This document shows positions 3,974-42,879 of a stretch of DNA of 64,000 nucleotides, piece by piece; the first letter of the stretch is position 1; each line of letters starts with the position of its first letter. A model generated the notes under the pieces. The model had not been told where the DNA came from. It saw nothing but the letters and a program-made list of their open reading frames with translations, and searched no databases. The translations under genes were made by a program, and so were the position numbers. The stretch is taken from positions 186,001 through 250,000 of IMG/VR virus record IMGVR_UViG_3300020188_000808. One strand, given 5' to 3'.

Positions 3974-4873
3974 TCAAGTTCCCCAGGCATTTCCGAATAA
4001 GCTGATGTGTAGTCTTGGAGTGAATCGCCATCCTTTTGCCATACACGCTTCAGCAACATCTTTAACGTTGAGGGAATATTCTTCACTGCGTCCACCCAAA
4101 GGCATAAGATATACTGGACATTGTACCCCGGCACTTCTGTAAGCCTCCACAGCTCTTTCAACTTCTTCAAAGTCGCCTTGAGTAGCGACAACAAACTTAA
4201 GATAGATGTCGCAATTAGTAATAGTACTATACTGACTAGCCACATCAGGCTTAATAGCAGTATCCCAAGGTTCTCCACTAACACTAAGTTTTGGGGAACA
4301 AGACCATGTAACTTTAATCCTGTCTTGATTGTTGAGATAGTCAAAGAAATCTTCGTGTAAAGTTTGCGTAGTGTTTGTTTCAAATGTAACATTTTTTAAG
4401 TCCTGCATACGTGGATGCTCGAATAATTCAATATATAATCGTTGCCATGCAAGTAATGGCTCGCCTCCGGTTAATATTAAATGGACATCTTGTCCATTGT
4501 CCTGTACCCACTTACCATTTGGAGTAAGTGAAAGTAAATGTTCAACAACAGCATCAACACCTGCTAGTTTATTAAAGTGTTTAAACTCAGGGTAGATACT
4601 TGCGTATGTATCACAACCTGTGTGTATAATAGGCAAGTCATTAAATTCTTTTGTAGTTTCGTGTACACCAGCATCAATCAATGCTTTAACTTCTGCATTG
4701 TGTTTTTTGCCGTCTTTGTGTTGTTCCCAACGATCACGTTTCTCATCTGTACCAAAGTTCATACAACGAAAATTACAACCAAATGTACGTAAGAACACAC
4801 TAGGTACTCCTACATATTGTCCTTCACCTTGTACACTATAAAATGCTTCTGAGTATCTAAGTTGAGCTGGCAT
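3974..4873 (-). CDS. queE: 7-carboxy-7-deazaguanine synthase (radical SAM)
   Basis: FYSVQGEG, VFLRTFGCNFRC, a later CDT cysteine, TGGEP, ETN, SPKL, C-terminal RLH. Confidence 0.92.
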   Translation of the reverse strand: MPAQLRYSEAFYSVQGEGQYVGVPSVFLRTFGCNFRCMNFGTDEKRDRWEQHKDGKKHNAEVKALIDAGVHETTKEFNDLPIIHTGCDTYASIYPEFKHFNKLAGVDAVVEHLLSLTPNGKWVQDNGQDVHLILTGGEPLLAWQRLYIELFEHPRMQDLKNVTFETNTTQTLHEDFFDYLNNQDRIKVTWSCSPKLSVSGEPWDTAIKPDVASQYSTITNCDIYLKFVVATQGDFEEVERAVEAYRSAGVQCPVYLMPLGGRSEEYSLNVKDVAEACMAKGWRFTPRLHISLFGNAWGT

Positions 4874-5061: not shown

Positions 5062-5249
5062 TATGACACCACCTTAAGCAAAGGCTCAGTAGTCGTACTA
5101 TCATTATAGTCATCACCAAAGAACCTACGTACCGTTGTTTCTTTGCGTAGCATACCGTCTTTAACACGATACGTAATAAACTCTTGCTTAACAACTCCTG
5201 ACATATCGCCCAGGCTGTCAACTGCTGATTTTAATGGTCCGTCACTCAT
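5061..5249 (-). CDS. hypothetical protein
   Basis: 62-aa ORF translationally coupled on both sides. Confidence 0.6.
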   Translation of the reverse strand: MSDGPLKSAVDSLGDMSGVVKQEFITYRVKDGMLRKETTVRRFFGDDYNDSTTTEPLLKVVS

Positions 5250-5929
5250 TTTGAAAACTCCTGTTGTAATTTAATATTGTCCATAAATTCTTTTTTAGTA
5301 CCCGCATCTTCATTAAAAGCACCTTTAAGCACAGTTGTCTGTGTTAAACTGCTAGTTGCCATAATGCCTCTATTCTCACAACACCCATGTGTTGCCTGAA
5401 TATAAACACCTACGTTCTTTGAACCAGTTGCTTTCATAATCTCACGTGCGATATCATTACAAAGTTCTTCTTGTAGTGTACCACGTCTAGCACACCATTG
5501 TGCAATACGTGTGTATTTGCTTAAACCAATTAGTGTTTCAGCGGCAATAATACCAATGTATGCAATACCTGTTACTGGTTGATGATGATGTGAACACACA
5601 CTTTTAAGTTCTGAACGTACAACTAACATACCTTGATAACCATCATCTACATGATTAGGAAATGCAGTTGCATTAGGCATAGGATCATAACGTCCTGCCA
5701 TTAGTTCATTAATATACATTTTAGCAAGACGTCTACCAGTGTCCATACTGTTAGGATCATTTGCTCTATCAATTAATAAACTATCTAATACTGATTCAAA
5801 CTTAGGTGTAAGTTCTTCAATCAGTTCTTCTTTGTCGCCCTTCTGTAGGACTAAACTAATATTATCACCCGCCCAGTAACGTATGCCTTGTTCTTCTAGG
5901 CGAGCTTTAATTTGTTCACTTTTACTCAT
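5246..5929 (-). CDS. folE: GTP cyclohydrolase I
   Basis: SVCSHHHQP, GLSKYTR, LQEEL, HGCCENRG motifs. Confidence 0.95.
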   Translation of the reverse strand: MSKSEQIKARLEEQGIRYWAGDNISLVLQKGDKEELIEELTPKFESVLDSLLIDRANDPNSMDTGRRLAKMYINELMAGRYDPMPNATAFPNHVDDGYQGMLVVRSELKSVCSHHHQPVTGIAYIGIIAAETLIGLSKYTRIAQWCARRGTLQEELCNDIAREIMKATGSKNVGVYIQATHGCCENRGIMATSSLTQTTVLKGAFNEDAGTKKEFMDNIKLQQEFSK

Positions 5930-5973: not shown

Positions 5974-6002
5974 ATTATATACTTTATTTAGGTTTTTGTC
6001 AA
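5974..6002 (-). promoter_or_regulatory. consensus sigma70 promoter TTGACA-N17-TATAAT upstream of folE
   Basis: Perfect -35/-10 read directly; the spacer also contains TAAATA. Confidence 0.85.
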
Positions 6003-6007
6003 TGACT

Positions 6008-6214: not shown

Positions 6215-6225
6215 AAAGTTCCTTT

Positions 6226-7074: not shown

Positions 7075-7451
7075 GACTCGTAACTTTGTTTTGTAGGAAG
7101 AACACCACGAACACCACCTTTTGGATCGTCCATATCCCCGTCACGTCTAAAAATTAAATGTACATGTGGATACATACAAGTTTGTCCTGCACTCTTGCCT
7201 ATATTAATACCCATGTTGTAACCTGTAATATTATTGTTTTTACTTACAACATTTTCGTAGCCCATAGTAACACCATAATTAAAACATTTCATAATAGCTT
7301 CATGTGTGTTTTCACGTGGTACAATTAGTGTGTGTCCTTCTGTAACAGGATACTTGTCATTGTATACAACAAAGTCTCTTGTACTAATCTGTACATCGTT
7401 CCAAGGTGCTCTACCATCTGCTTGAGCTTGTTCTAAATTATCAACTTTCAT
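7071..7451 (-). CDS. HIT-family nucleotide hydrolase
   Basis: DKYPVTEGHTLIVP and GQTCMYPHVHLI (first His of the triad is Tyr); likely start MKVDN at 7451. Confidence 0.88.
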   Translation of the reverse strand: MKVDNLEQAQADGRAPWNDVQISTRDFVVYNDKYPVTEGHTLIVPRENTHEAIMKCFNYGVTMGYENVVSKNNNITGYNMGINIGKSAGQTCMYPHVHLIFRRDGDMDDPKGGVRGVLPTKQSYES

Positions 7452-8161
7452 TTTATACTCCATTTTGGATCACGTTTAATTAACTTCTTAGGTCTTAGTT
7501 TTAAGGCTCTAGTCATTAAATTAATTATACCACCTTTCTTAAAGTTTGTCAAATATCTTTTACGTTCTAATTCTTTAATCAGTTCATCTGTAAGTAAACA
7601 CTCTTCTAAACCGACCTTATTTGTCAAGTTAGTTGTTGTAAACTTAATGTAGCACAACGGGTCACCACGCTTAATAGACAGCTTAGATCGCGTATTATCA
7701 AAGATAAACCCCCAACTAGTAGTCCTTATCCACTTGTGTATATTAAAAGATCCACCAACAACTTCTCCAGGAAAGTTTTCGTTATGCATAAATGGCGGAA
7801 GTATTTCCATTAAGCAAGGCTCGTCTGCAACAAACAAATAATTTAAATTAAATTGAAATAATGGTTTTTTAACATCGTGCATATCTTCTTTAGGGTGTAT
7901 AGTAAACAAGTTATGTAATTGATGGTCATCAATTTCGTTAGATGTAACAACTACTATTCCGTCTTTAACTTCTGCATCAAACGACACAGGAGACTTTAAT
8001 AGAAACAAGTTGTTATAAAATCCTTGATATGAAGGACAATCAATAACACCACGCTTGTTGTAATCTTTGTTAACTACTTTTGGCGTTTTAAATCTTTCAG
8101 GTTCTATAACTAATAGATCAGGAATAGCACCTGCCCAACACCACCCTATATCAGCTGTCAT
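7448..8161 (-). CDS. hypothetical protein, possibly beta-rich dUTPase-like fold
   Basis: 237-aa ORF; CPxxxG and IKRGDPLC motifs resemble ORF 38479..39231. Confidence 0.55.
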   Translation of the reverse strand: MTADIGWCWAGAIPDLLVIEPERFKTPKVVNKDYNKRGVIDCPSYQGFYNNLFLLKSPVSFDAEVKDGIVVVTSNEIDDHQLHNLFTIHPKEDMHDVKKPLFQFNLNYLFVADEPCLMEILPPFMHNENFPGEVVGGSFNIHKWIRTTSWGFIFDNTRSKLSIKRGDPLCYIKFTTTNLTNKVGLEECLLTDELIKELERKRYLTNFKKGGIINLMTRALKLRPKKLIKRDPKWSIK

Positions 8162-8699
8162 ATTCGCCTACATTCTCCCAAGGATATACTAACCATACAT
8201 CATTTTCTTCTTTATTAATTTCGTGGCAAGTGTAATTTACGTCATGAAAAGTACTTGCTAGGTTTTCAGTGAGTGTAGCAAAGCGAACATTGTTACCCCA
8301 AACACGTTCCCATTTAGGATCGTTAGGTAAACAACTTGCTTGCCAGTCTTCTTTGATCCAATTGAATGTAGCACCAGTATCGTTGATATCATCTACAATA
8401 AGAATTTTCTTTTCTAATGGACCACCTGTAACTTTTAATGCATCATCACTTACATAACCATATGCATCTTCTGCCATCCAAAAGTTACTTTCTTGATGAC
8501 TTTCACTATCACGTAGACTTACTTTAATTGCTTCGCAACGAATGCCTGTCATGTTTGAAATAATAGTAGCAGGTACATTACCTCCACGTGTAATACCTAC
8601 AATATAATCAGGACGCCAATGGTCCTTATACATTTGATTTACAATATTAACGCACATGTTTTCTACGTCAGTCCAACTATAGTAATGTTTCTTAATCAT
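8151..8699 (-). CDS. type I phosphoribosyltransferase (purine PRTase-like)
   Basis: VGITRGG, PRPP-binding ILIVDDINDTGATF, C-terminal WLVYPWE. Confidence 0.9.
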   Translation of the reverse strand: MIKKHYYSWTDVENMCVNIVNQMYKDHWRPDYIVGITRGGNVPATIISNMTGIRCEAIKVSLRDSESHQESNFWMAEDAYGYVSDDALKVTGGPLEKKILIVDDINDTGATFNWIKEDWQASCLPNDPKWERVWGNNVRFATLTENLASTFHDVNYTCHEINKEENDVWLVYPWENVGEYDS

Positions 8700-9327
8700 T
8701 TTTGTTTCTCCAAGGGTATGTTTCTTTCATTGCTAACCTTAATGGTCCTTGTGTGTGTATTTCAGGATCAAAGGGTACAAATTTGATAGTAGGTGTAAAT
8801 CTGTGAAAGTCTTTGAAAGGAGTAGCAGTATGTAATATATTACTTTTGAAAATAATCATACGTCCTGGAATAGGAGGGATAGCAATAATTTCAGGATATG
8901 ATTGACCTTCAATAGTACCTTCGTGTTTAAGGTTAGTAATAAACTTTGTTTCACCACCTTGATTAATATCCCAGCTATTGTTTGCATAGAACATAAATGT
9001 CCATGCATTATCACCTTCGTCATCAATGTGATAGTTTGCTAATTCACGTGGTGCAAAGATGTTTGCATGTGATCTTTTTAATACTGATCCATGTACATGC
9101 GGTACATGTTCTTCTAAGAATGTCCAAAGACTGTTAAATGTTTTAGTACCTAAGTAATCTCCGGTACTCATTCCTGTTGGAGGCAAATCAACATCGTCAA
9201 CTTCACCGTAGAAATAATTCCAACTAGCGACTTCTGTTACTAGTTCATTTAGTTCAGGTGGTCCAAATACTTCATCATATATTTTAATATCACCATCTAA
9301 GTATTCTGTAATTTTAGGCTTATGCAT
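8692..9327 (-). CDS. 2OG-Fe(II) oxygenase
   Basis: HxD (YHIDD), GGET, distal His (ILHTA) and Arg. Confidence 0.85.
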   Translation of the reverse strand: MHKPKITEYLDGDIKIYDEVFGPPELNELVTEVASWNYFYGEVDDVDLPPTGMSTGDYLGTKTFNSLWTFLEEHVPHVHGSVLKRSHANIFAPRELANYHIDDEGDNAWTFMFYANNSWDINQGGETKFITNLKHEGTIEGQSYPEIIAIPPIPGRMIIFKSNILHTATPFKDFHRFTPTIKFVPFDPEIHTQGPLRLAMKETYPWRNKND

Positions 9328-9766
9328 CTTTCAAATAATCCCTATTATCAATCCACTTGCCATCTTTGACAAAGCCCCAGCTTTGTGCTTTTTTACCCAT
9401 AAAGAACAAACTCCAACATGGAATGTTATTGTTGTTCTTGTCTTTAGCAAGTTCTAACCAATGCAAATCTTTTGCACTTCTAAATCTAATATGTCCTGGC
9501 CCACGCCAAAACTTACCTTCAGGTGTATGTTCCCAATAGCCACCACTTAAAATAATAGCACCCCAACTCCATGGATGATCATGTAGTGTAGGTTCATCGC
9601 TTACAAGAACTTTGTGTAGTGTAATATTAAACGGAAAGTTTTTACGTTCTTTTAAAAATAGATAATAACGGATAAGGTAAGGTACCTTTCCGTCTCTGTC
9701 TGTAATTACTCGACGTCTTCCAAGTTTGTCCATAATCTTAGAAAGGAATGTCATCATCAAATTCAC
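9320..9766 (-). CDS. cupin-fold protein
   Basis: LHDHPW...GGYWE...LHWLEL metal-binding cupin pattern; true start probably 9757 or 9733. Confidence 0.65.
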   Translation of the reverse strand: MNLMMTFLSKIMDKLGRRRVITDRDGKVPYLIRYYLFLKERKNFPFNITLHKVLVSDEPTLHDHPWSWGAIILSGGYWEHTPEGKFWRGPGHIRFRSAKDLHWLELAKDKNNNNIPCWSLFFMGKKAQSWGFVKDGKWIDNRDYLKDA

Positions 9767-10118
9767 CTGCTTCTTTTTTACCTTTGTAATCTTGCTTAAC
9801 TAAATCATACATAGTTTTAAAATTATGCCAAACTATTTTTAGTGCTGGATACTCTTTACACATTTCTGTTATTTCATCTTCGTCTAATGTATTTAGGCCA
9901 ACGTCAGAAAAAAGTGTACTATTAATATCAATACTAGTAATTCCGCCTACTGTTGCACCTGACTGAAATGAGTCATCAAATGAATATGTAACGTCACTCA
10001 TTGTGTTATCAAGGATAAGCCCACTATCTGATGCACTACCAATAGTAATTGTACTTGTACTGCACTGATCGTCAGTACCAATAGTAATTGAATAGTCATC
10101 TTTGTCTTTATCATCCAT
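9738..10118 (-). CDS. acidic protein ending in an SSB-like tail (EFDDDIPF)
   Basis: AAGGA SD before the ATG at 10118; C-terminus read directly. Confidence 0.7.
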   Translation of the reverse strand: MDDKDKDDYSITIGTDDQCSTSTITIGSASDSGLILDNTMSDVTYSFDDSFQSGATVGGITSIDINSTLFSDVGLNTLDEDEITEMCKEYPALKIVWHNFKTMYDLVKQDYKGKKEAGEFDDDIPF

Positions 10119-11157
10119 TACTAATTCCTTTATATAAAGCTCGACCATCAAAGAACTCTTTCTTTAATAGATCTGTTTGTTTTAATAGTGCAGGCAAATA
10201 AGATTCATAATTTTCTACATAGTCAACTAACTGTGCAACTATTTTATCTTTATTAGCTTTGTAGCTTTCAAAAGATTCAGTCCACGCACTAGGATATTTA
10301 AATTTATCAATAGCCATTTCACTATAGCTTAGTCTATCAGGCACCATAGGAAGTGCATTTACTAATGCACCTTCATACCAACTAATGCCAAGTGTTTCTT
10401 GTAGGTTAGCACTAAACACTACTTTTGCTTCACCTAGCAAGTTATGATATTCGTTTTTACTTAATGTTTGTTCTTGACATACTACAAATTCGTATTCAGG
10501 AAGTTGCTCCGCTAAGTCACGGAATATGTCTACTTGCTTCTCCGGTGCTACACGATGTGGGAACAAGACCAAGTCTCGCTTCTGCATACCTTTGTAACTG
10601 TCTAAACTGTTACGCAAATACTCCATAGGCCAACCAACTCTGTGATTCTTGTTTGGATCCATACGTAAACTTTTTGCAAATAGATCAATATGGAATTGTG
10701 TAGCAAAATAGTTATCATCATAACATTCATACATAGAACGTTCTGCATGTCTTACCCAAGGTTTGTCGCCTATTAGTCTACCCAAGAAGTCATGTGGATC
10801 ATAGCTACCAGCATGCCACATACCACCAATGCGAATGTCAACACCCAATAGTTCTGCCATGTAGCGTAGTTGTATAACTGTAGGGTTCCAGGCATCGGTA
10901 TAAAGAAAATAATCACCGTCCTTAATAGTTCCTGCACAGAACATTTCTCCTATTTGTTCTAGTTGTTTACTTTTGTAAACGTTAGTACCACCAAAGTTGA
11001 GAAAAGCCCCAGGCGTTGTAGCCTGAGGCGTTTCCCCTCCACTAATAATCTTTACGTCCATATTTGTAGCACGTTGAAGTTGCTTTGGAAGATATTCTTT
11101 CCATTGCTTAGTATAACGGGTATCTACTGCTTCAATGTCTACAATGTACGTTGTCAT
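10111..11157 (-). CDS. GT-B glycosyltransferase (GT4-like)
   Basis: MWHAG in the N-terminal domain; FPHRVAPEKQ and QETLGISWYEG (EX7E-like) in the C-terminal domain. Confidence 0.8.
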   Translation of the reverse strand: MTTYIVDIEAVDTRYTKQWKEYLPKQLQRATNMDVKIISGGETPQATTPGAFLNFGGTNVYKSKQLEQIGEMFCAGTIKDGDYFLYTDAWNPTVIQLRYMAELLGVDIRIGGMWHAGSYDPHDFLGRLIGDKPWVRHAERSMYECYDDNYFATQFHIDLFAKSLRMDPNKNHRVGWPMEYLRNSLDSYKGMQKRDLVLFPHRVAPEKQVDIFRDLAEQLPEYEFVVCQEQTLSKNEYHNLLGEAKVVFSANLQETLGISWYEGALVNALPMVPDRLSYSEMAIDKFKYPSAWTESFESYKANKDKIVAQLVDYVENYESYLPALLKQTDLLKKEFFDGRALYKGISNG

Positions 11158-11375
11158 TAGTTAGGTTTCCTATTCCGGGTAAACTTACCCTTATTCTTAT
11201 TATCACGATTCTTCCTCAATTTGGAAGGATCTAAATAGAATTGCCATGCTCGGCTATTCTTGTTGTACAAATCTTTTTCATCGAACTTAAAACCGTAGTT
11301 ACGACAAAAAACACGGAACTTATCCAAGTCATCAAAAATTTTGATAATCTCAGGCTTTTCTTCCCAGTACGACAT
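11157..11375 (-). CDS. small basic hypothetical protein
   Basis: 72 aa, GGAG SD, TAATG-coupled to the glycosyltransferase. Confidence 0.65.
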   Translation of the reverse strand: MSYWEEKPEIIKIFDDLDKFRVFCRNYGFKFDEKDLYNKNSRAWQFYLDPSKLRKNRDNKNKGKFTRNRKPN

Positions 11376-11387
11376 TGCTTTACTCCT

Positions 11388-11846
11388 TTAGCTTTTTGCA
11401 TACTCAATATGTGCGCCGTTTTCTCCATCTTCACTAATGTCAATATGAATCTCACGACCGGGGTATTTAGCATTGATCTTTTGGTACAGATCGTCTGCCA
11501 TCATCTCACAACTTTTATAATCTACATTTAGTTCACCTTCATATAGTTTCATTAACCATCGTTTAAATTGAATAAATTCGATATCTCTGTCGTTGTGTGT
11601 TACAGTGATAGCGACCTTAAAATGGAATATGTGTCTGTGGGGATATCCCAAAAACGAAACATCATATTCGTCACCTGTTGCAAGACTAGGATCATCTAGT
11701 GCCGCAGGATACTTATGGATACCTTCTTTAGTAAAAGTAACCCAAATCATTCTTTTTGCGTTGTTCATAAGATCTTTCATGTTTTCTTCTTTAGTCCTTC
11801 TCATCATATAATCATGATGTGATTCGTAGTTGTTATTTGTACTCAT
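11388..11846 (-). CDS. QueD-paralog T-fold protein, candidate CDG decarboxylase (DpdL-like)
   Basis: LGYPHRHIF (LxxxHRHxF) instead of the QueD CxxxHGH motif; DRDIEF and SCEMMA T-fold motifs; true start likely a later Met because the promoter abuts 11846. Confidence 0.75.
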   Translation of the reverse strand: MSTNNNYESHHDYMMRRTKEENMKDLMNNAKRMIWVTFTKEGIHKYPAALDDPSLATGDEYDVSFLGYPHRHIFHFKVAITVTHNDRDIEFIQFKRWLMKLYEGELNVDYKSCEMMADDLYQKINAKYPGREIHIDISEDGENGAHIEYAKS

Positions 11847-11875
11847 AGTATACTATCTTTCGTCCTCATTGTCAA
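11847..11875 (-). promoter_or_regulatory. sigma70 promoter TTGACA-N17-TATACT
   Basis: Read directly; the -35 and spacer lie in the 3' end of the upstream gene. Confidence 0.75.
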
Positions 11876-12401
11876 CCGGATTATCGTTTTCATATTTGGA
11901 CCAATCTGTAAATTTTGAACGGTCTTGTAAGTCATGTACTTGATGAATCCAAACTCCAGCATTAGATGCCTTAAAGTCTTTGTCATCAATTTTAATACAA
12001 GCATTATAGTTTAGTAGATCAATGTAAGGAAGTTTAACACTAATTTGGCTAATAAATTTATTATCTTCGTTGTACCCTGCTTCTATAACATACTCATGAT
12101 ATTTTACATCATAGTCTAATGTAACCATATAACCTTCTTTAAGCAAACCATGTACAAGTGTATCCCATGCCTTGTTAGTAGCATCGTCACCGTGTGGTAA
12201 TTTTATTTGAAAACTTTGATTAGCACCAAGATAGATATGATCAACGTGATGCTTGTGTGCTTGTTCGAGAACTTCATCTAATGGAGGACATCCTACGACA
12301 AATAGTGTATCCATTTCAAATGCTGGTGTTTTTTCTACTTCATAACCAGTAAAGTATACTACATCATCTTTAACTACACCATCTGAATAATCACGTTTCA
12401 T
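11853..12401 (-). CDS. hypothetical protein within the deazaguanine cluster
   Basis: 182-aa ORF; VDHIYLGANQSF and IKIDDKDF segments; family not recognised. Confidence 0.75.
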   Translation of the reverse strand: MKRDYSDGVVKDDVVYFTGYEVEKTPAFEMDTLFVVGCPPLDEVLEQAHKHHVDHIYLGANQSFQIKLPHGDDATNKAWDTLVHGLLKEGYMVTLDYDVKYHEYVIEAGYNEDNKFISQISVKLPYIDLLNYNACIKIDDKDFKASNAGVWIHQVHDLQDRSKFTDWSKYENDNPVDNEDER

Positions 12402-12579
12402 TTTTTGTTAACCTATCAATTTGATCTTTAATTACTAATTTCATTTTTTTAAGTTTTGTTAATAGGGCTTTATGTCCAAAGTCTCTATACATTGTACGTT
12501 CTTTTTCAATCTCGTCAACTTTTTTTGCATAGAATTTATGCTCTTCGGTTAATTTTTTTACAAGTTTTTTTTGTTTCAT
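12391..12579 (-). CDS. small basic coiled-coil protein (DUF465-like)
   Basis: 62 aa, LKKMKLVIKDQI pattern. Confidence 0.55.
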   Translation of the reverse strand: MKQKKLVKKLTEEHKFYAKKVDEIEKERTMYRDFGHKALLTKLKKMKLVIKDQIDRLTKNET

Positions 12580-12584
12580 AATAT

Positions 12585-12613
12585 ATTATAGCACTATAAT
12601 GACTTGTCGTCAA
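12585..12613 (-). promoter_or_regulatory. sigma70 promoter TTGACG-N17-TATAAT
   Basis: Read directly. Confidence 0.75.
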
Positions 12614-13199
12614 GTGCTTCTCCTCCTAAATTGCCATTAAATGCTATTGATATACGTGATGTATTGCTCGTATTATCTCCAACACTATGATTGATCCAAC
12701 CCGGAAAACATACAAGATCACCATCTTTTGGCATCACTGTGTATCTTGTTCCGTTAAAGGGAGTTGGAATTTTGGTTAGTTTATATGGTAATGCATAGTC
12801 CATTAGTCCATGCGGACTAGAAAGAACAAGATTACCACCTTCTGCGGGCGCCTTTACGTAGTATACAGCTGACATAATATGTCCTGGGTGCATATGCATG
12901 TCATTAGTATTAGACCTGCTTGTATTAGGCTTATTAACGTTAATCCAAGCCTGTGTTACTTCTATACGGCAGTTGTCAACAAGTCCTAATAGTTCTGCTT
13001 GTTTATCAAACAATGCTTGTACACGAGCTACAAGAGGTTGCAATATTACGTTAGTAAGATCAAGATGCATACTTTGCCAGTTGTCATTTGTACCTTCTGC
13101 ACTATACAGGCCATGACAAAATGCATACAACGTATCGTTGCTTAGTTCGTTAGCATGTTCATACAAGAAGGGCGTTGCAAAAAGCGATTCTGTATGCAT
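12594..13199 (-). CDS. putative 2OG-Fe(II) oxygenase (TIGR02466-like)
   Basis: HMHPG, SAVYYV, FPGWINHSV, RISIAFN. Confidence 0.85.
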   Translation of the reverse strand: MHTESLFATPFLYEHANELSNDTLYAFCHGLYSAEGTNDNWQSMHLDLTNVILQPLVARVQALFDKQAELLGLVDNCRIEVTQAWINVNKPNTSRSNTNDMHMHPGHIMSAVYYVKAPAEGGNLVLSSPHGLMDYALPYKLTKIPTPFNGTRYTVMPKDGDLVCFPGWINHSVGDNTSNTSRISIAFNGNLGGEALDDKSL

Positions 13200-13208: not shown

Positions 13209-14741
13209 CTATAAATTCTCTTCTAAGTTATCTAACTTATCTTCTGATAGTTCAGGTTCGTCTACTGTTGCTGTGTTAGTATCTTCAACTTCAAACAAGT
13301 TTCCAAAGTGTGTACTTGCGTTTACAGTCTTTTTACCTGTTGCACCACGTGTTCCAATAATGGTCATAAAAAACTTTGAATTGTCTTCTATGATTTTGTT
13401 CGCTTTGTCTCTGTCGTCAGTTGCAAATATTGCCTCCACAACATCTCGGAAAAATACCCTGTCAAAACGCTCTTCCACAAGCATGTTCGGAACGACTCCA
13501 TTGTCGTATTGTCTATTCGCTTCTTGTACTGCATTAATATGACTCCATACATTATGACCCATTTGGATCGCATATGAAAAACTATCCCAAGATGTTTTTC
13601 CTTCTTTACCTATTTTATTTAAATCACCAGGTGCATAAATTGTAACATCTTTGGCTTTTAAATCTTGTGTAATAGGTGAATCTTTAAAACTAGTATGTTT
13701 ACCTTCTCTAACAAATGCCTGTCCAAACGGAGTAGTGTCTGTTGCTAGTGCTTTGTTGTCGATACTAGGAACCATTCTATACACCCATTTACTTCTATCC
13801 TGTGTTTCTAATTCACAATATATTTGACCGTTTGCTGTTGCTAAAAATGGAGAAGCACAATCAAATGTAATCATAAAGTTAGGGTTGTGATACTTACGCA
13901 CCGCACGTTGGATATCAGTTAATAGTGTAGCCCACTCCAATTTACTTGTACCTAAGAAGTGCATTACATCATGTAAGCCTGTTTGTAATAGTCCGTCAAA
14001 CCTTAATGCAACTAGACGTTTAAGAACCAAATGCACATCACACATGTTCTGTCCACCCATACTCCAACCATTAAAATGTGTATCAGGATACTTGGCTGGA
14101 TCACAATAGTCTTTCATCTGTTGATACCAATCTTCAGCATCAGCATGATTTTCACCTTGTAGTACGTTTAGGAATTTACAAGCACCACTTCTATTTTTCA
14201 TAAAGAAGTCATTGTTAATACGTGTAGCATTAACGGCATCTTGATAGTTGTCAATACCTGTTGCTTTAGCACCTTCAGGTGAACGTGCCACCCAGGCAGG
14301 GATATCAAGGATCATACCATAGTCCATGTAAGCATCCATCCATGCAAGAACTTGTGTACGTTTTTTCATTGCTTTAGGACAGTTAGGATTCTTCCAGTCG
14401 CCTTCCCAAACACCTTTACCAATTTGGAAACCACCTGAGTCACCAAGTAGCCAACTAGTAGTACGATCTCTGTTACGGATCATATCTTCTTTAGGTGAGT
14501 CCTTGTTGATATCAAGTTCGGCATGTCCTGCTGAATACAAACTCCAATGGTATTGAAACTGTCCGTCTTTACGGTTTAACCAATTAAGACTTTCAACACC
14601 GTTCTTAAAGTTTGCAGGAATACGATTGTATTCTACATATTCGCCTGCTCTTTGTTTACCAACAAACGTAGCATAGAAGCCACTTAGTGCTGGTAAGAAC
14701 GTTGCGTAATCGTTCTGTGCTTTTGTTAAGTCGGTATTCAA
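13209..14741 (-). CDS. dpdA: tRNA-guanine-transglycosylase-like DNA 7-deazaguanine transglycosylase (DpdA/DpdA2-like)
   Basis: TGT motifs in the correct order: DSGGFQ, LDIP, VLQG, MGG, HFLG, FDCAS; clustered with folE, queE and the QueD paralog. Confidence 0.8.
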   Translation of the reverse strand: MNTDLTKAQNDYATFLPALSGFYATFVGKQRAGEYVEYNRIPANFKNGVESLNWLNRKDGQFQYHWSLYSAGHAELDINKDSPKEDMIRNRDRTTSWLLGDSGGFQIGKGVWEGDWKNPNCPKAMKKRTQVLAWMDAYMDYGMILDIPAWVARSPEGAKATGIDNYQDAVNATRINNDFFMKNRSGACKFLNVLQGENHADAEDWYQQMKDYCDPAKYPDTHFNGWSMGGQNMCDVHLVLKRLVALRFDGLLQTGLHDVMHFLGTSKLEWATLLTDIQRAVRKYHNPNFMITFDCASPFLATANGQIYCELETQDRSKWVYRMVPSIDNKALATDTTPFGQAFVREGKHTSFKDSPITQDLKAKDVTIYAPGDLNKIGKEGKTSWDSFSYAIQMGHNVWSHINAVQEANRQYDNGVVPNMLVEERFDRVFFRDVVEAIFATDDRDKANKIIEDNSKFFMTIIGTRGATGKKTVNASTHFGNLFEVEDTNTATVDEPELSEDKLDNLEENL

Positions 14742-15707: not shown

Positions 15708-16475
15708 TTAGTTATATACATTATATTTAGGTTTTTCTAAAAAGTCAAGCTCTTTCTTGTCTTTTAAGAATTGTATTAGCTCAATTGTTGTTTTCCAACC
15801 CAAGCCTTGTAACACTGATATGTCAGCAACATTATCAGCTCTTTCATTGGGAGTATCCATTTTCATTTGTGGATTCATTCCAAATTCTTTTAAAATACTT
15901 TTTAGTGATTGGCTTTTGCCAGTTCCGATATCAATAACTCCTCTTACATCTTCGTTTTTGATTAATGTAAGTATTGCACTTACAATATCGGCAACATGAA
16001 TAAAGTCTCTTTTATGATTAGTTACGTGTGGTACATCATTGCGTATAATTCGAGGTATTAACATGTTTGGCCTAAGTTCTGAGTTGTTACTGTATATAGT
16101 TGTAAATCTCATGCCTAGACTTGATTGTGGTGCAATGCGTTCAACTGTATGTTTAGTTAATGCATACGGATTTCTATTAGGTTCTTTTGCAGTACTTGAA
16201 CTAGCATACAGTATTCTAGTATTTTTAAAATGGTCAAATAATCTTTTAGTTGCTAGTACGTTATGTTGAAAATACAAATCAGGTTCTTCTAAACTTCTTA
16301 GTATTCCGCTTTCGCCTGCAAGATGAATTACTAGATCAACATCGAAGTCTAACGAACAGTCTAGTAAGTTATTACCGTCTTTTAAATCAATACCAATAAC
16401 ACGATGGTCTTTGGTTAGAGCAGTATACAACTCTGTTCCAACCATACCTTTATGTCCTGTTAGTAGTATCCTCAT
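15708..16475 (-). CDS. NAD-dependent epimerase/dehydratase (extended SDR)
   Basis: LTGHKGMVG Rossmann motif, HLAG, ASSS, YALTK (YxxxK), RDFIHV. Confidence 0.9.
   Translation of the reverse strand: MRILLTGHKGMVGTELYTALTKDHRVIGIDLKDGNNLLDCSLDFDVDLVIHLAGESGILRSLEEPDLYFQHNVLATKRLFDHFKNTRILYASSSTAKEPNRNPYALTKHTVERIAPQSSLGMRFTTIYSNNSELRPNMLIPRIIRNDVPHVTNHKRDFIHVADIVSAILTLIKNEDVRGVIDIGTGKSQSLKSILKEFGMNPQMKMDTPNERADNVADISVLQGLGWKTTIELIQFLKDKKELDFLEKPKYNVYN
15720..15748 (-). promoter_or_regulatory. sigma70 promoter TTGACT-N17-TATAAT upstream of clamp and dpdA
   Basis: Read directly; inside the epimerase 3' end. Confidence 0.75.
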
Positions 16476-19840: not shown

Positions 19841-19889
19841 TGTCACTTGGGGCTGACAAAAACCAATAAGGTCGCTTATGGCCGACTTT
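19841..19889 (-). promoter_or_regulatory. tandem hairpins 5' of the polB ribosome-binding site (candidate translational operator)
   Basis: UGUCA-GCCCCAAG-UGACA 3 nt before AAGGAG, plus GUCG-GCCAUAAG-CGAC upstream. Confidence 0.5.
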
Positions 19890-20190
19890 TACCTTCATTC
19901 TTAAAATATTCATTCGCCTCTCTTGCCTTGTCATCTATCCAAATATCATAGTGTGGCTTTCTAAAACTTAGTGTTGTGTATAGTACACCCCACTCCGCAA
20001 ACTGGTCTTTAGTAAGCTCACTCCAATCTTTGCCTGTGCTACCGCCTCTAGCAGTCCAATAATGTATTTCATTGCCTTCATTATACAACTTATTAAAGTG
20101 TTGTATACGTTGAACATCTGGTTTACTAAATTCGTACTCACTGTTATTATTATAACAGATAGTTCCGTCTATGTCAACCATATATTTCAT
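19876..20190 (-). CDS. small HAD-family phosphatase
   Basis: VDIDGT, WTARG, KPHYDIWIDDKA; start at 20190 by ATGA coupling. Confidence 0.85.
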   Translation of the reverse strand: MKYMVDIDGTICYNNNSEYEFSKPDVQRIQHFNKLYNEGNEIHYWTARGGSTGKDWSELTKDQFAEWGVLYTTLSFRKPHYDIWIDDKAREANEYFKNEGKSRP

Positions 20191-20495
20191 ATTACGAACA
20201 ACTGTATTAATGCCCAAAGGTTCATTGCTGAGAACCAAGAACAAAGTATAATTACAAATGCCGCTTGTCTAATAACTGCACTAACAATGCCCAAAATACT
20301 TCCAACCAAATATAATGGCACAAATATTGTTGTTGCAGGGTCTAATATAGTAAAGCTCAATATTGCACTTGCTGAGATTAAGAACAATGCCTCAATCATT
20401 TCGCAATAGAATGCAACAGGACTTAGCCTATAACTTGTTTTAAAGAAATTGGTTACTCTATTCAAACTACTTGTCCTTGCCAACTGTAACAACAA
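20187..20495 (-). CDS. small multi-pass membrane protein
   Basis: Three hydrophobic segments; the true start is probably downstream (TTG near 20465). Confidence 0.55.
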   Translation of the reverse strand: MLLQLARTSSLNRVTNFFKTSYRLSPVAFYCEMIEALFLISASAILSFTILDPATTIFVPLYLVGSILGIVSAVIRQAAFVIILCSWFSAMNLWALIQLFVI

Positions 20496-40954: not shown

Positions 40955-41865
40955 ACTTTACCAAGTTTAATTAATGTTGCGGCTAAATTAATTTCCGGAT
41001 CAACTACTAATGTGTGATCTACTAGACCTTGTTTAATAATCATAATAGCTTTATCTTGTTGATCAGCATCACCGAATAAATCAATATTGTCATAAAGCCA
41101 ACGATAAATCTCTTCCATCTCTTCAGCTCTAGCACTTGCACAAACAAGTTTACGTGCTTCTGTAATTTTACCTGCTTTAAATAATTGTACCATATCAAGT
41201 TTCCAATCAGCTTCTGTTTTATCAGCTTCGTTGGGTTTAATTAGTACACCGTCTTGTGAATTCATTTGCACCATATTAATGCATTTACGTAAATCTGGAT
41301 ATGTTGCTTTTACATATGTATCAAGTGTGTCTAAGTCTGGTTGTACACCTTCTGCAATTAAAATCTCTGCAACTCTAGCAGTAAACTCTGTTTGATCTAC
41401 TTTTGCAATATGAAATCCTTGACATCTACTGTGCAATGCCGGAATAATTCTATTAGGATAGTTACACGTTAAAATAAATCTGCTTGTAGTATGATATTCC
41501 TCCATAACACCACGTAGTGCGGCTTGTGCGTTAGGCGACAAATAATCAGCCTCATCTAGTAGCACAACCTTAAAGTCACCAAATGGAATCATCTGTACAA
41601 AGTTTACAATCTTATTTCTAACTTCATCTACAGAGTTTGTTCGACTTGCGTTAATTTCTAGTATGTCTAGATCATTTAATTCTAGTTCGTTAAACAGTAG
41701 TTTAGCAAGTGTTGTCTTTCCAATACCTGCGTTACCACTAAACAACAAATGAGGAATAGTTTTGTCTTTAATCCAAGTTTGTATTTGTTTCTTTTGATGT
41801 TCATCTCTGAACACATAACCGTCTACTGTTTTAGGACGATATTTTTCTACCCAAAGTTCTTTCAT
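40951..41865 (-). CDS. clamp loader AAA+ subunit (RFC small / T4 gp44-like)
   Basis: WVEKYRP, GNAGIGKTT, INAS, LLDEAD, SRC, DLRKCIN. Confidence 0.93.
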   Translation of the reverse strand: MKELWVEKYRPKTVDGYVFRDEHQKKQIQTWIKDKTIPHLLFSGNAGIGKTTLAKLLFNELELNDLDILEINASRTNSVDEVRNKIVNFVQMIPFGDFKVVLLDEADYLSPNAQAALRGVMEEYHTTSRFILTCNYPNRIIPALHSRCQGFHIAKVDQTEFTARVAEILIAEGVQPDLDTLDTYVKATYPDLRKCINMVQMNSQDGVLIKPNEADKTEADWKLDMVQLFKAGKITEARKLVCASARAEEMEEIYRWLYDNIDLFGDADQQDKAIMIIKQGLVDHTLVVDPEINLAATLIKLGKV

Positions 41866-42275
41866 GTTTGTGCCTCGCTTATTCGTTTTCTCAAATTAGA
41901 TGTACTAAATGAGTGTTGTCTTTTATTATAATACAATTCTATGCCTTTGTCAACACAAATCTGCTTACCTGTAAACTCTTTATCACGATATTCTTCGCCA
42001 ATAAATCTACGATTCAATGTATATGTTAACAAAATATCTTTTAAATCTTGTTCTGTAGCATAGGGAATAATTTCATCGATATACTTACAACCTTTTAATT
42101 GAACATATCGTTCGAACACACTTTGTATAGGTTTATTCTTTTCTGGTCTATCAATAGTTGGATCTGTTTGTAATCCAACAATCAAATAGTTGCAATTCTC
42201 ACTTGCTTCTTTTAGCATAGCAACATGTCCACTATGGAACAAATCAAAACTGCTAAATGTTATTCCTACTGTCAT
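41862..42275 (-). CDS. TagD-like cytidylyltransferase
   Basis: FSSFDLFHSGH, LIVGLQTD, RQHSFSTS; start MTVGIT at 42275. Confidence 0.88.
   Translation of the reverse strand: MTVGITFSSFDLFHSGHVAMLKEASENCNYLIVGLQTDPTIDRPEKNKPIQSVFERYVQLKGCKYIDEIIPYATEQDLKDILLTYTLNRRFIGEEYRDKEFTGKQICVDKGIELYYNKRQHSFSTSNLRKRISEAQT
41925..41953 (-). promoter_or_regulatory. consensus sigma70 promoter TTGACA-N17-TATAAT upstream of the clamp loader
   Basis: Perfect match inside the cytidylyltransferase 3' end. Confidence 0.75.
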
Positions 42276-42879
42276 AGTTAACTTGCTCCTTTTTAAATAT
42301 AGGTAATATAATATTGCGTTGTCTTGCAAACGGAGTACTCTTACCACTAAACACGTATCCAGCAGTAACACGAGGACTTACATCTTTAACAGGTATGCCT
42401 CTATGTAAGTAACGACTTGGAAAGACGATTAGACGTCCTTCTTTGTATTCCACTTCATCAATTTTTTTACCATCTTTCTCAGGATCGCCATCCCAAAAAT
42501 CCATACCAGTGTCACCGTGAATTAAATAAACCATAGTGTAAGCAGGTACATCATCTCCACTATCGACATGCAATCCACCTGTGTGTTCTTTTGTTGTAAG
42601 ATTAATTTGTACTTGATTTAATTGTATGTCGCCAACATCATTGTCAATTAGATTCTTATGATGTTCAAAGGCGTGCCATACTGCTTTTAGTGTCCACGGA
42701 GTATTTTCTAACTCTGCTTGTGAAAACTGTTGACTAAAGATTTGATGTCCTTGATACTGACCTAAACCTCTATGTCCAAAACTAAGTGGATAATGTAATA
42801 CTTGATTTATAGCTTGGTCATGTAACCATTGTGGAACTACATCATCAAGTATTACTATTTTATTGGGATCATAATTCAT
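42253..42879 (-). CDS. 2OG-Fe(II) oxygenase
   Basis: LHVDS, FPSRYLHRG, PRVT. Confidence 0.82.
   Translation of the reverse strand: MNYDPNKIVILDDVVPQWLHDQAINQVLHYPLSFGHRGLGQYQGHQIFSQQFSQAELENTPWTLKAVWHAFEHHKNLIDNDVGDIQLNQVQINLTTKEHTGGLHVDSGDDVPAYTMVYLIHGDTGMDFWDGDPEKDGKKIDEVEYKEGRLIVFPSRYLHRGIPVKDVSPRVTAGYVFSGKSTPFARQRNIILPIFKKEQVNYDSRNNI

Follow-up and report, generated by a model that had tools for sequence, protein, structure and literature searches.

Does the glycosyltransferase gene of a marine jumbo phage belong to the pathway that replaces guanine in phage DNA with 7-deazaguanine derivatives, or does it merely lie close to that pathway? The question arises from a stretch of 64,000 nucleotides (hereafter the window) that comprises positions 186,001 to 250,000 of IMG/VR record IMGVR_UViG_3300020188_000808, a 267,783-bp record that is about 75% complete. 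A preliminary description of the sequence had placed a putative glycosyltransferase (GT) gene behind a dedicated promoter together with a QueD paralog resembling DpdL and a 72-aa ORF, had pointed out an NDP-sugar epimerase, a HAD phosphatase and a cytidylyltransferase in the vicinity, and had inferred that the GT acceptor is DNA or a deazaguanine derivative rather than a surface glycan and that the phage may make its own sugar donor. The observation proved to be correct as each of these items is present in the sequence, although the GT assignment could not be made by family scans and required a structure model. The interpretation was supported in part.

A conserved promoter precedes the dpdL-orf72-GT genes

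The sigma-70-like element TTGACA-N17-TATACT is located on the minus strand with the -35 hexamer at 11875-11870 and the -10 hexamer at 11852-11847, and matches the consensus at 11 of 12 positions. The motif TTGACA-N17-TATAAT with at most one mismatch occurs 12 times in the window, invariably on the minus (coding) strand, whereas shuffled sequences yielded 1.34 ± 1.17 sites and none of 100 shuffles reached 12. A TTGACN-N16-18-TANNNT element lies just upstream of the DpdL ortholog in 73 of 78 distinct related IMG/VR loci even though the flanks have diverged. The element also was found before u243 (60/61 loci) and FolE (58/59 loci), but never before orf72, GT or u126. The -10 hexamer (to 11847) abuts the annotated dpdL ATG at 11846, and the element overlaps the last codons and stop of the upstream ORF, u182, so that a transcript from this promoter would start inside the annotated dpdL ORF. 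The TTGAC/TATAATA promoters of Pseudomonas phage PA5oct have been mapped by RNA-seq (PMC7318152).

The first gene, dpdL (11388..11846, minus strand), is followed by orf72 (11157..11375, minus strand) which encodes a 72-aa protein with a basic C-terminal tail. The latter gene has its own AGGAG Shine-Dalgarno sequence 7 nt upstream, is conserved in 69 of 78 loci and in relatives binned into MAGs, has no Pfam or PHROG hit, and is specific to this clade. The stop codon of orf72 (11159-11157) and the start codon of the GT gene (11157-11155) share base 11157 in a TAATG junction. The GT gene (10111..11157, minus strand) in turn overlaps the start of u126 (9738..10118, minus strand; ATGGATGA), a very acidic 126-aa ORF that is conserved in 62 of 78 loci and gave a weak match to phrog_30369. 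As the conserved promoter lies before dpdL and none lies before orf72 or GT, the three genes most likely share one transcript.

The description of the promoter as dedicated was not supported. The next strong coding-strand promoters downstream are at 7552-7524, which is a perfect 12/12 match, and at 6002-5974, and no terminator-like site was found on the minus strand in the intergenic stretches between. Thus, the unit probably continues through five further genes, u126, a cupin, a 2OG oxygenase, a xanthine/guanine phosphoribosyltransferase-like gene and u237, to a likely end at about 7,550. Read-through from upstream promoters also is likely. The phosphoribosyltransferase-like gene (8151..8699, minus strand; PF00156 E 1e-10; NF006613 XPRT E 5e-11) has homologs in phiST, BUCT-ZZ01, PA5oct and L085 next to deazaguanine genes.

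Deazaguanine genes surround the GT gene

The DpdL homolog is a QueD/T-fold paralog and proposed 7-carboxy-7-deazaguanine decarboxylase, an activity that has not been shown experimentally (PMC10516641). The protein matched CGPG_00067 of Cellulophaga phage phiST in hhalign (probability 99.1%, E 1.8e-18), was 51% identical to the Acidovorax phage ACP17 protein and 32% to that of phiST in tblastn, and matched phrog_17812. It carries the LxxxHRHxF signature (L-GYP-HRH-I-F) that replaces the CxxxHGH of QueD (PMC10516641), and L44, H48, R49, H50 and F52 are invariant in a 16-member alignment. Homologs outside the clade begin near residue 30, and the true start may be an internal methionine (M14, M23, M27 or M33).

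A 510-aa DpdA-like protein of the DNA/tRNA-guanine transglycosylase (TGT) superfamily is encoded at 13209..14741 (minus strand). The protein possesses DSGGFQ at residues 101-106, and DSGG-x-Q is invariant in 10 diverse homologs. There was no Pfam TGT hit, but all 49 PDB hits of the family profile were TGT chains with a best E of 1.3e-4 over about 170 residues. The subfamily is unresolved: comparison with the phiST DpdA3 protein (CGPG_00065) by hhalign gave a probability of only 18% and E 0.0013, the phiST protein is 259 aa and lacks DSGGFQ, and tblastn returned no hit to phiST or Campylobacter phages.

FolE, GTP cyclohydrolase I, is encoded at 5246..5929 (minus strand; PF01227 E 8e-38) behind the perfect TTGACA-N17-TATAAT promoter at 6002-5974. 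A QueE-like radical-SAM 7-carboxy-7-deazaguanine synthase is encoded at 3974..4873 (minus strand), with NCBIfam QueE matches of E 5e-13 to 2e-8 that fall below the cut-offs and a weak PF04055 hit, but in synteny with QueE of PA5oct and ACP17. QueD lies elsewhere in the record. QueC was not found, although this absence is provisional in view of the incompleteness of the record.

The GT gene encodes a predicted GT-B fold, GT4-like enzyme

The 348-aa protein yielded no Pfam hit at E ≤ 0.01, a single weak GT61 match (E 0.17) when the limit was relaxed to E 10, and thus no DUF3524-type domain, and no PHROG hit. The Glycos_transf_1 model (PF00534) matched the protein at E 0.06 and 10.3 bits against a cut-off of 26.4, which nevertheless was the only match to that model in the record. 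The family is too divergent for the curated model. In contrast, an AF2 model of high confidence (pLDDT 96.7, pTM 0.93) shows two Rossmann-like domains with an interdomain cleft. Structural alignment with VIA-align gave Z 26.5 (rmsd 3.1 Å, 317 residues aligned) to sucrose-phosphate synthase and Z 25-26 (rmsd about 3 Å, about 300 residues) to BshA and MshA, and Foldseek matched GT4 chains with probability 1.00. In an alignment of 80 family members down to 27% identity, E262 of the EX7E motif is invariant, and E254, R202, K207 and H115 are conserved in at least 90% of members. The EX7E and R/K diphosphate-binding residues align with the E-x-x-G-x4-E-A and F-x-G-R-L-x3-K motifs of 8xsg, 6eji and 2f9f. 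The protein therefore is predicted to be a retaining glycosyltransferase. The family is acidic, with a median pI of about 5.7, and is large, with at least 1,214 clusters at 50% identity and thousands of near-identical copies in ocean metagenomes.

Comparison with the T4 α- and β-glucosyltransferases had been suggested beforehand as a test of the DNA-acceptor reading. Neither enzyme was among the 50 best structural matches, which are all GT4/GT5/GT20-type enzymes, although a lower-ranked similarity is not excluded.

Linkage of GT to deazaguanine genes is conserved in distant phages and bacteria

GT homologs of 29-73% identity lie next to a DpdA-like transglycosylase, DpdL, or both in Pseudomonas phage PA5oct, Acidovorax phage ACP17, Xanthomonas phage X1, Sinorhizobium phage Phosso and metagenomic phages. 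The genes abut, often with overlapping stop and start codons, and occur in both orders. In ACP17, the GT ortholog is between dpdA and dpdL; in X1 the order is GT, a TGT-annotated gene, DpdL and QueE; and the linkage is evident in a T4-like metagenomic contig at 42% identity and in another at 29%. Among GTDB genome contigs with adequate flanks, the DpdA-like gene was within 3 kb of GT in 25 of 26 loci and DpdL in 14 of 26, and none had neither. The most constant partner of GT is therefore the DpdA-like transglycosylase and not DpdL. In alphaproteobacterial chromosomal islands, a PF02592 (Vut_1) membrane protein lies between or beside the pair. This is the family of the E. coli preQ0/preQ1 importer YhhQ. 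Overall, GT was located within 3 kb of a DpdA-like gene and/or DpdL in every locus with adequate flanks, except for one distant (26%) homolog in Xanthomonas phage PhiXhv-15 that lies next to GlmS and an LmbE-type deacetylase with no deazaguanine genes nearby. The genomic context thus ties GT to 7-deazaguanine DNA modification rather than to surface glycans, and a role in the deazaguanine pathway is well supported.

Sugar-nucleotide genes are present but do not track with GT

The gene at 15708..16475 (minus strand) encodes a short (255 aa) extended-SDR protein of the NDP-sugar epimerase/dehydratase family (PF01370 E 2e-23; phrog_540 E 2.5e-40) whose nearest PDB sequences are MoeE5, RmlB and GalE. 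It is conserved in 53 clade loci, but is absent next to GT in other lineages. The HAD-like small ORF at 19876..20244 (minus strand) matched Pfam HAD_PNKP only weakly (E 0.0045, below cut-off) but phrog_1238 at E 2.7e-27. Its start is uncertain because a promoter motif lies inside it at 20177-20149. The cytidylyl/adenylyltransferase-like gene at 41862..42371 (minus strand; PF01467 E 5e-12; TIGR02199 E 5e-16, below cut-off; phrog_7878 E 3e-34) is HldE domain II- or TagD-like, has ethanolamine-P and glycerol-3-P cytidylyltransferases as PDB matches, and is situated 30 kb from GT next to the clamp loader.

Outside the window, an ADP-heptose-type pair comprising an HldE-like (E 2e-103, 346 bits against a cut-off of 521) and an HldD-like (232 bits against 275) gene is located at 52.6-54.7 kb of the record (G000 C1). 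With respect to the GmhA-HldE-GmhB-HldD pathway, the HAD-like ORF and a second adenylyltransferase are in the window, whereas no SIS/GmhA protein was found in the record. No RmlA/GalU-type nucleotidyltransferase was found in the record either. These sugar-nucleotide genes are shared with marine cyanomyophages, and the HldE-like gene has no match in the other GT-bearing phages. Thus, the proposal that the phage makes its own donor was overstated: NDP-sugar enzymes are encoded, but are not linked to GT by distribution.

GT may decorate a deazapurine in DNA

The explanation that is favored, with moderate confidence, is that the 348-aa protein is an active retaining glycosyltransferase that is an accessory enzyme of a 7-deazaguanine DNA modification module. 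In this view, FolE, QueD and QueE would make 7-carboxy-7-deazaguanine which is processed by DpdL, the DpdA-like transglycosylase would exchange the product for guanine in phage DNA, and GT would add a sugar from an NDP-sugar to the deazapurine, most likely on the DNA after insertion as in T4 hmC glucosylation and in queuosine mannosylation and galactosylation in tRNA. The result would be a bulkier hypermodified guanine that blocks host nucleases. Expression would be from the conserved host sigma-70-type (early-like) promoter before dpdL which would drive dpdL, orf72, GT and the five downstream genes as one unit. The analysis itself establishes the predicted fold with its donor-site motifs, the conservation of the promoter, and the conserved linkage to DpdA-like and DpdL genes. 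In contrast, co-transcription, DpdL decarboxylation, NDP-sugar-dependent catalysis by GT, the deazapurine as acceptor, the acceptor atom, the timing of the step after insertion into DNA, and the donor are inferred.

Other lines of evidence accord with this view. No thymidylate-synthase-type hydroxymethylase (PF00303) that would provide a 5-hydroxymethyl-pyrimidine acceptor was found in the record, which is only about 75% complete so that absences are provisional. PA5oct DNA resists cleavage at G-containing restriction sites and is sensed as hypermodified (PMC12191111). ACP17 dpdL and dpdA alone gave no dDG in E. coli, and it was noted that other enzymes may be required (PMC10516641). The QTMAN and QTGAL enzymes glycosylate a 7-deazaguanine base in tRNA after TGT insertion (PMC12518689). 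However, with FolE, QueD, QueE and DpdL but no QueC, the expected base is 7-deazaguanine or its 7-carboxy form, neither of which offers an ordinary hydroxyl acceptor, and the 2OG oxygenases and cupin nearby are not conserved with GT. Furthermore, phiST has DpdL and makes plain dDG without any GT, which shows that GT is not needed for the core pathway. As bacterial islands often lack DpdL, the acceptor cannot be defined by DpdL chemistry alone.

The alternative that survives best, although it is considered unlikely, is that GT acts before insertion on a free deazapurine base, nucleotide or pathway intermediate, such as the substrate or product of DpdL. The DpdA-like enzyme then would install the decorated base, or the sugar would be a transient activating or protecting group. 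The closest structures are GT4 enzymes with small-molecule acceptors, namely BshA with malate, MshA with inositol-phosphate, LmbT with ergothioneine, and sucrose-phosphate synthase, which fits a free-base or metabolite acceptor as well as DNA. The acidity of the family, the tight coupling to DpdL, which is a base-level enzyme according to PMC10516641, the purine phosphoribosyltransferase in the same unit, the base importer in bacterial islands, and the unusual size of the 510-aa DpdA-like protein also favor this alternative. Against it, the known sugar hypermodifications of nucleic acids (T4 hmC, queuosine in tRNA) are made on the polymer (PMC12518689), TGT chemistry needs a free N9, and known TGT pockets accept at most queuine-sized bases. 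A predicted GT-DpdL complex spoke neither for nor against an interaction and so gives no support for a metabolon.

It is very unlikely that GT modifies host envelope glycans or LPS, virion proteins or another metabolite and resides in the cluster only because early genes are tightly packed. GT4 enzymes mostly build glycans, the phage carries ADP-heptose-type genes of the kind found in cyanophages, and the distant PhiXhv-15 homolog lacks deazaguanine neighbors. Nevertheless, adjacency to DpdA-like or DpdL genes is retained across phages of Pseudomonas, Acidovorax, Xanthomonas, Sinorhizobium and marine hosts and across alphaproteobacterial islands, in both gene orders, and chance packing does not survive that much rearrangement. 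The heptose genes also do not co-occur with GT elsewhere.

A pterin-glycoside route also is very unlikely. FolE, a PTPS-like T-fold enzyme, the SDR at 15708 and GT match the enzyme set for pterin glycosides, as in the cyanobacterial tetrahydrobiopterin glucoside pathway, and DpdL activity has never been shown. However, the most constant partner of GT is a TGT-superfamily protein, the 7-deazapurine-specific QueE is in the cluster, bacterial islands carry a deazapurine-type transporter but no FolE, phiST DpdL phages contain dDG (PMC10516641), and the SDR is absent from the other GT lineages. Finally, a non-glycosylating partner of the DpdA-like enzyme, analogous to DpdB for bacterial DpdA and acting in DNA handling or as a nucleotide-binding cofactor, is suggested by the almost constant pairing and by the inactivity of DpdA3/DpdA4-type enzymes alone in E. 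coli (PMC10516641), but is very unlikely because the full set of GT4 donor-binding and catalytic motifs is conserved in at least 90% of a very diverse family, and phiST and Campylobacter-type DpdA3 phages manage without GT.

Eight 7-deazaguanine derivatives are known in phage DNA and none carries a sugar. A more speculative reading, which is possible but tentative, is that GT-bearing phages (this abundant marine jumbo phage, PA5oct, ACP17, X1 and Phosso) and a set of alphaproteobacterial islands carry a glycosylated 7-deazaguanine in their DNA, which would be the first sugar-bearing purine hypermodification of DNA. The attachment might involve unusual chemistry, either a C-glycoside at the nucleophilic C7 that DpdL frees by decarboxylation or an acyl-glycoside on the 7-carboxyl, and the DpdA-like, YhhQ-like and GT trio in bacteria would be the modification arm of an undescribed restriction-modification-like system. 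If GT does decorate the base, it would define a new class of DNA hypermodification, could explain why DpdA and DpdL from ACP17 failed to reconstitute dDG in E. coli and what makes PA5oct DNA hypermodified to END nucleases, and would predict new targets and evasion routes in the interplay between phages and defense systems. Several GT-bearing phages are already in culture.

Relation to characterized systems

The closest system is phage 7-deazaguanine DNA modification by DpdA with FolE, QueD, QueE and DpdL, as described for phiST and ACP17 (Cui et al., 2023; PMC10516641), whose gene set is the same. ACP17 was among the phages tested in that work, yet a glycosyltransferase is not mentioned there, and no published link between a GT and deazaguanine DNA modification was found. 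phiST, in which dDG was measured, lacks GT, and the transglycosylase in the window is twice the size of the phiST DpdA3 protein and retains the DSGGFQ motif that the latter lacks.

The T4 α- and β-glucosyltransferases likewise are GT-B fold phage enzymes encoded with base-modification genes, and the role inferred for GT, the decoration of an already modified base to defeat host nucleases, would be shared. However, EX7E retaining-type motifs are present in GT and the linked base is a purine analog. QTMAN and QTGAL add a sugar to a 7-deazaguanine derivative after its insertion by a TGT enzyme, but to the cyclopentenediol hydroxyl of queuosine in tRNA (PMC12518689), whereas there is no QueC, QueA or QueG route here and the nucleic acid presumably is DNA. 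QTMAN (GTDC1) is a GT4-type enzyme. BshA and MshA, the GT4 retaining UDP-GlcNAc transferases of bacillithiol and mycothiol synthesis, share the two-domain architecture and EX7E donor site, but sequence identity is only 11-12%, the genomic context is entirely different, and the N-terminal acceptor domain of GT has its own conserved set of residues (E9, R14, Y15, W19, K62, Q65, D88, W90 and Y99).

In bacteria, the alphaproteobacterial islands in which GT homologs occur with a DpdA-like gene, near an integrase or a Lamassu gene, are reminiscent of a modification island such as the Dpd system (dpdA-K). No PADLOC model matched the island proteins tested, and the islands carry a Vut_1/YhhQ-like transporter and a GT instead of DpdB/DpdC.

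Organization of the deazaguanine gene region

The window belongs to a viral record of 267,783 bp with a GC content of 36.4% that is about 75% complete. All genes in the region of interest are on the minus strand. Running from 14741 down to 3974, the genes encode a 510-aa protein (13209-14741), a 2OG-Fe(II) oxygenase (12594-13199), u62 (12391-12579), u182 (11853-12401), a 152-aa QueD paralog (11388-11846), a 72-aa ORF designated orf72 (11157-11375), the 348-aa protein that is the focus of this analysis (10111-11157), an acidic 126-aa ORF designated u126 (9738-10118), a cupin (9320-9766), a second 2OG oxygenase (8692-9327), a xanthine/guanine-type phosphoribosyltransferase (8151-8699), u237, a HIT protein and u282 (together 6226-8161), FolE (5246-5929), and a QueE-like radical-SAM enzyme (3974-4873). 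Canonical QueD is located outside the window at positions 255051-255434 of the record, whereas QueC was not found in a search of this incomplete record. A megablast search for near-identical DNA in the phage collection produced no match.

Several members of the cluster have less certain roles. The u182 gene is conserved throughout the clade of related loci and has a homolog in Acidovorax phage ACP17 between FolE and dpdA (E 8e-14). A search of the Atlas with u182 returned nothing, and the confident parts of its AlphaFold2 model (pLDDT 82.6) have no significant fold match: the best Z score was 6.1, which is below the noise mark, and matches to QueE chains at Z of about 5.9 were not significant. 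The u126 product is very acidic and rich in Ser, Thr and Asp, is conserved in 62 of 78 clade loci, and has a composition reminiscent of DNA-mimic anti-restriction proteins. A xanthine/guanine-type phosphoribosyltransferase recurs inside or beside DpdL/DpdA deazaguanine clusters in unrelated phages, with or without the glycosyltransferase, including the additional loci L002 (8300-8761) and L085 (4124-4585) as well as phiST and BUCT-ZZ01. The enzyme might remove the guanine released by base exchange thereby pulling replacement towards completion, or alternatively might convert the deazapurine base into a nucleotide. At least five 2OG-Fe(II) oxygenase genes are present in the record, at 8692-9327, 12594-13199, 20787-21326 and 42253-42879 on the minus strand of the window and at 9609-10184 of L095, a locus of the record outside the window. 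Two of these genes are inside the deazaguanine cluster. However, they are present in only 12-16 of 78 related loci and so are not core to the module.

A conserved promoter element precedes the DpdL gene

The preliminary description placed a TTGACA-N17-TATACT promoter ahead of the QueD paralog, orf72 and the glycosyltransferase gene, and proposed that the three genes form one transcription unit with a dedicated promoter. This observation held: TTGACA (11875-11870), a 17-nt spacer and TATACT (11852-11847) are present exactly as described. Taken alone, an 11/12 match proves little, as loose matches in the region are at chance level (42 found, 41.9 expected). The strict motif is different. TTGACA-N17-TATAAT with at most one mismatch occurs 12 times in 64 kb, in each case on the coding strand, compared to an expectation of 1.34, and none of 100 shuffles reached 12. 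The element was examined further in 78 distinct related loci from IMG/VR in which the glycosyltransferase is 76-100% identical to that of the window. A TTGACN-N16-18-TANNNT element lies directly before the DpdL ortholog in 73 of 78 loci, before u243 in 60 of 61, before FolE in 58 of 59, and before u182 in 32 of 75. In contrast, it was found before the phosphoribosyltransferase in 1 of 72 loci and in none before orf72, the glycosyltransferase, u126 or the cupin. Overall the motif occurs 428 times on the coding strand and 93 times on the other. Thus, the element is real and the glycosyltransferase gene has no promoter of its own. Pseudomonas phage PA5oct, a relative that carries the same module, uses TTGAC/TATAATA promoters located at starts mapped by RNA-seq (PMC7318152).

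The gene junctions fit co-translation. The orf72 gene has an AGGAG site 7 nt upstream, its stop codon overlaps the start of the glycosyltransferase gene (TAATG), and the stop codon of the latter overlaps the next start, that of u126 (ATGGATGA). However, the description of the promoter as dedicated to three genes requires qualification. The next strong promoters on this strand of the window are at 7552-7524 and 6002-5974, both with 12/12 matches, and no intergenic terminator-like site was detected on the minus strand in between. A terminator-like hairpin inside the glycosyltransferase ORF (11029-11006) was treated as a chance occurrence, with 9 such sites found against 4.6 expected. The unit therefore probably is eight genes long, extending from DpdL to u237, instead of three, although this extent is inferred from sequence alone.

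The -10 hexamer abuts the annotated ATG of DpdL at 11846. In relatives this distance ranges from 0 to about 11 nt and often is 6-9 nt, which would fit leaderless transcripts, whereas in this window a transcript from the promoter would begin inside the annotated ORF. DpdL homologs outside the clade start near residue 30 of the window protein, and an internal Met could therefore serve as the start. Alternatively, the full-length form could be made from read-through transcripts. Residues 1-32 of the protein form an N-terminal extension in the marine clade that includes a conserved ERYYDYM-x-RR-x-REED-type stretch and that is absent from the two DpdL homologs outside the clade that were aligned (loci L085 and L087); the region might correspond to a peptide, a regulatory RNA region or a leader. 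Several of the strict promoter motifs on the minus strand lie inside annotated ORFs, namely the HAD-like ORF (20149-20177) and the cytidylyltransferase-like ORF (41925-41953), or end 0-5 nt before a start codon, as for DpdL (11847-11875) and u62 (12585-12613). Either these phages use leaderless transcripts or several mechanically assigned ORF starts are too far upstream.

The 348-aa protein is a predicted GT-B glycosyltransferase

Family scans of the 348-aa protein with Pfam, PHROGs, NCBIfam and PADLOC gave nothing usable, and a single-sequence search of the PDB also returned nothing, so that a profile and a fold model were needed. An exhaustive search for homologs found at least 1,214 clusters at 50% identity, and a word search produced at least 8,000 hits that were mostly marine. 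With an alignment of 80 members, AlphaFold2 gave a confident model (pLDDT 96.7, pTM 0.93) which has the GT-B fold. The best structural matches, also examined with Foldseek, are GT4-type retaining enzymes: sucrose-phosphate synthase (Z 26.5), BshA (26.0), MshA (25.3) and GlgM (24.7). The family keeps the E254-x7-E262 motif, in which E262 is invariant and E254 is present in at least 90% of members, and also retains R202, K207 and H115-A116-G117 in at least 90% of members. A profile search aligned these residues with the classic GT4 donor motifs. T4 alpha- and beta-glucosyltransferases are not among the listed best matches. The N-terminal (acceptor) domain possesses its own conserved, aromatic-rich set of residues that comprises E9, R14, Y15, W19, K62, Q65, D88, W90 and Y99.

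Neighboring DpdL and DpdA-like proteins

The 152-aa protein is a DpdL homolog. Comparison with phiST CGPG_00067 using hhalign gave a probability of 99.1% and E 1.8e-18, the protein is 51% identical to the ACP17 protein, and it carries the published LxxxHRHxF signature. A complex prediction for the glycosyltransferase with DpdL (score 0.00, mark 0.32) is neither support for nor evidence against binding. The 510-aa protein has no Pfam hit, but it belongs to the TGT superfamily as it has an invariant DSGGFQ loop and its profile hits only tRNA-guanine transglycosylases in the PDB, with a best E value of 1.3e-4. The hhalign comparison with phiST DpdA3 gave a probability of only 18%, and the protein therefore is designated here as DpdA-like without placement in the DpdA3 subfamily.

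The glycosyltransferase gene is linked to deazaguanine genes in distant phages and bacteria

Conserved linkage provides the decisive evidence on the context of the glycosyltransferase. Among cultured phages, the gene for DpdL overlaps that of the glycosyltransferase (51% identical) in Sinorhizobium phage Phosso, with FolE and QueE following. In Pseudomonas phage PA5oct and ten relatives (45%) the order is DpdA-like, glycosyltransferase, DpdL, then a phosphoribosyltransferase-like gene and QueE. In Acidovorax phage ACP17 (38%) the arrangement is QueD, FolE, a u182 homolog, DpdA, glycosyltransferase, DpdL and QueE, and in Xanthomonas phage X1 (25%) FolE is followed at a distance by the glycosyltransferase, a gene annotated as queuine tRNA-ribosyltransferase, DpdL and QueE. 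Among metagenomic contigs, a T4-like contig (42%) reads QueE, PRTase, QueD, FolE, DpdA-like, DpdL and glycosyltransferase, and DpdL again overlaps the start of a 29%-identical homolog.

A scan of one genome per prokaryotic species found 38 loci. Among the 26 loci with at least 3 kb of flank on each side, 25 have a DpdA-like gene within 3 kb of the glycosyltransferase gene, 14 have DpdL, and none has neither. Many of these loci are large chromosomal contigs of alphaproteobacterial isolates, namely Ochrobactrum, Pelagibacterium, Devosia, Azospirillum, Methylobacterium, Aurantimonas, Shimia, Sulfitobacter and Magnetospirillum. The order there is DpdA-like, a PF02592 (Vut_1) membrane protein, optionally DpdL, and then the glycosyltransferase, with an integrase or a Lamassu gene nearby. 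PF02592 is the family of the E. coli preQ0/preQ1 importer YhhQ. The islands (GTDB genome contigs L104-L126, for example L104:4055-7053 and L115:5492-8557) also hold conserved large proteins with no Pfam or PADLOC hit, including an 853-aa and a 411-aa protein in L104, which has the integrase, and a 585-aa protein in L115, which also has a second GT1 and Lamassu LmuA. These islands could represent an undescribed deazaguanine-based modification or defense system.

The only exception found to this linkage is a distant homolog (26%) in Xanthomonas phages of the PhiXhv-15 type, including Ep026 and Ep032, where the gene is located beside GlmS and an LmbE/BshB-type deacetylase instead of deazaguanine genes (positions 4669-7903 of the PhiXhv-15 locus, L089). 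This arrangement hints at a GlcNAc-transfer-then-deacetylation module and possibly at UDP-GlcNAc as an ancestral donor for the family. Conversely, DpdL-positive phages without the glycosyltransferase also exist: phiST, which has been shown to contain plain dDG, RHph_I1_18, Bakedbeans, BUCT-ZZ01 and others. The glycosyltransferase therefore is an add-on to the core pathway, and its most constant partner is the transglycosylase.

The deazaguanine pathway, DpdL and DpdA are known, whereas a glycosyltransferase as part of such modules was not described in any of the papers that could be searched. The association of this predicted enzyme with the pathway is well supported at the level of genomic linkage, with its biochemistry being inferred.

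Proposed role in deazaguanine modification

In the most likely model, the phage makes a 7-deazapurine through FolE, QueD, QueE and DpdL, the DpdA-like enzyme swaps this base for guanine in DNA, and the glycosyltransferase adds a sugar to that base. By analogy with glucosylation of hmC in T4 and with glycosylation of queuosine in tRNA, sugar transfer is placed after insertion. The analysis itself establishes the predicted fold, the motifs and the linkage, and all functional statements beyond these, including glycosyl transfer and the timing of the step, are inferences. The preliminary description had proposed that the acceptor is DNA or a deazaguanine derivative rather than a surface glycan and that the phage may make its own sugar donor; this interpretation is supported in part. 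An hmC or hmU acceptor was considered and set aside, as no hydroxymethylase was found in the incomplete record, which gives no sign of a hydroxymethyl-pyrimidine acceptor. The glycosyltransferase also is the only match in the record to the Glycos_transf_1 model, albeit one that is below cut-off. Experimental hints in relatives fit the model: PA5oct DNA is reported to resist enzymes with G in their sites and to be attacked by sensors of hypermodified DNA although the chemistry of its modification has not been described, and ACP17 dpdA plus dpdL alone reportedly gave no product in E. coli.

Four weak points remain, namely that the expected bases, DG and CDG, lack a normal hydroxyl acceptor, that the glycosyltransferase family is acidic, that its structural neighbors act on small molecules, and that many bacterial islands lack DpdL. 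Accordingly, glycosylation of a free base before insertion is retained as the main alternative. Smaller weight is given to an unrelated glycan or protein acceptor, to a pterin-glycoside route, and to a role as a non-catalytic partner.

Sugar-nucleotide genes and the potential donor

The sugar-related genes named in the preliminary description, an NDP-sugar epimerase (15708), a HAD phosphatase (19876) and a cytidylyltransferase (41862), all exist in the window. Outside the window, the record also carries genes for an HldE-like bifunctional heptose kinase/adenylyltransferase (E 2e-103) and an HldD-like ADP-heptose 6-epimerase (232 bits), together at 52585-54656 (L095:6586-8657), which are flanked by a NUDIX protein, a cupin and a 2OG oxygenase. 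The window adds the phrog_1238 HAD-like ORF and a second HldE-domain-II-like protein, and the gene set resembles those of P-SSM2- and P-TIM68-type cyanomyophages. It therefore is plausible that the phage can make or remodel an NDP-heptose. However, the link to the glycosyltransferase is weak. HldE homologs are found in marine cyanomyophages and not in the other phages that bear the glycosyltransferase, and ADP-heptose as the donor was set aside on these grounds. In addition, the epimerase at 15708 is absent beside the glycosyltransferase gene in other lineages, and no RmlA/GalU-type nucleotidyltransferase or GmhA was found in the incomplete record. These genes thus cannot be tied to this glycosyltransferase, and a host NDP-sugar is an equally good donor. 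The window also encodes a 646-aa protein (24283-26223, minus strand) with an N-terminal cytidylyltransferase-like domain (phrog_3041, E 1e-55) and a C-terminal region that matches PHROGs of unknown function.
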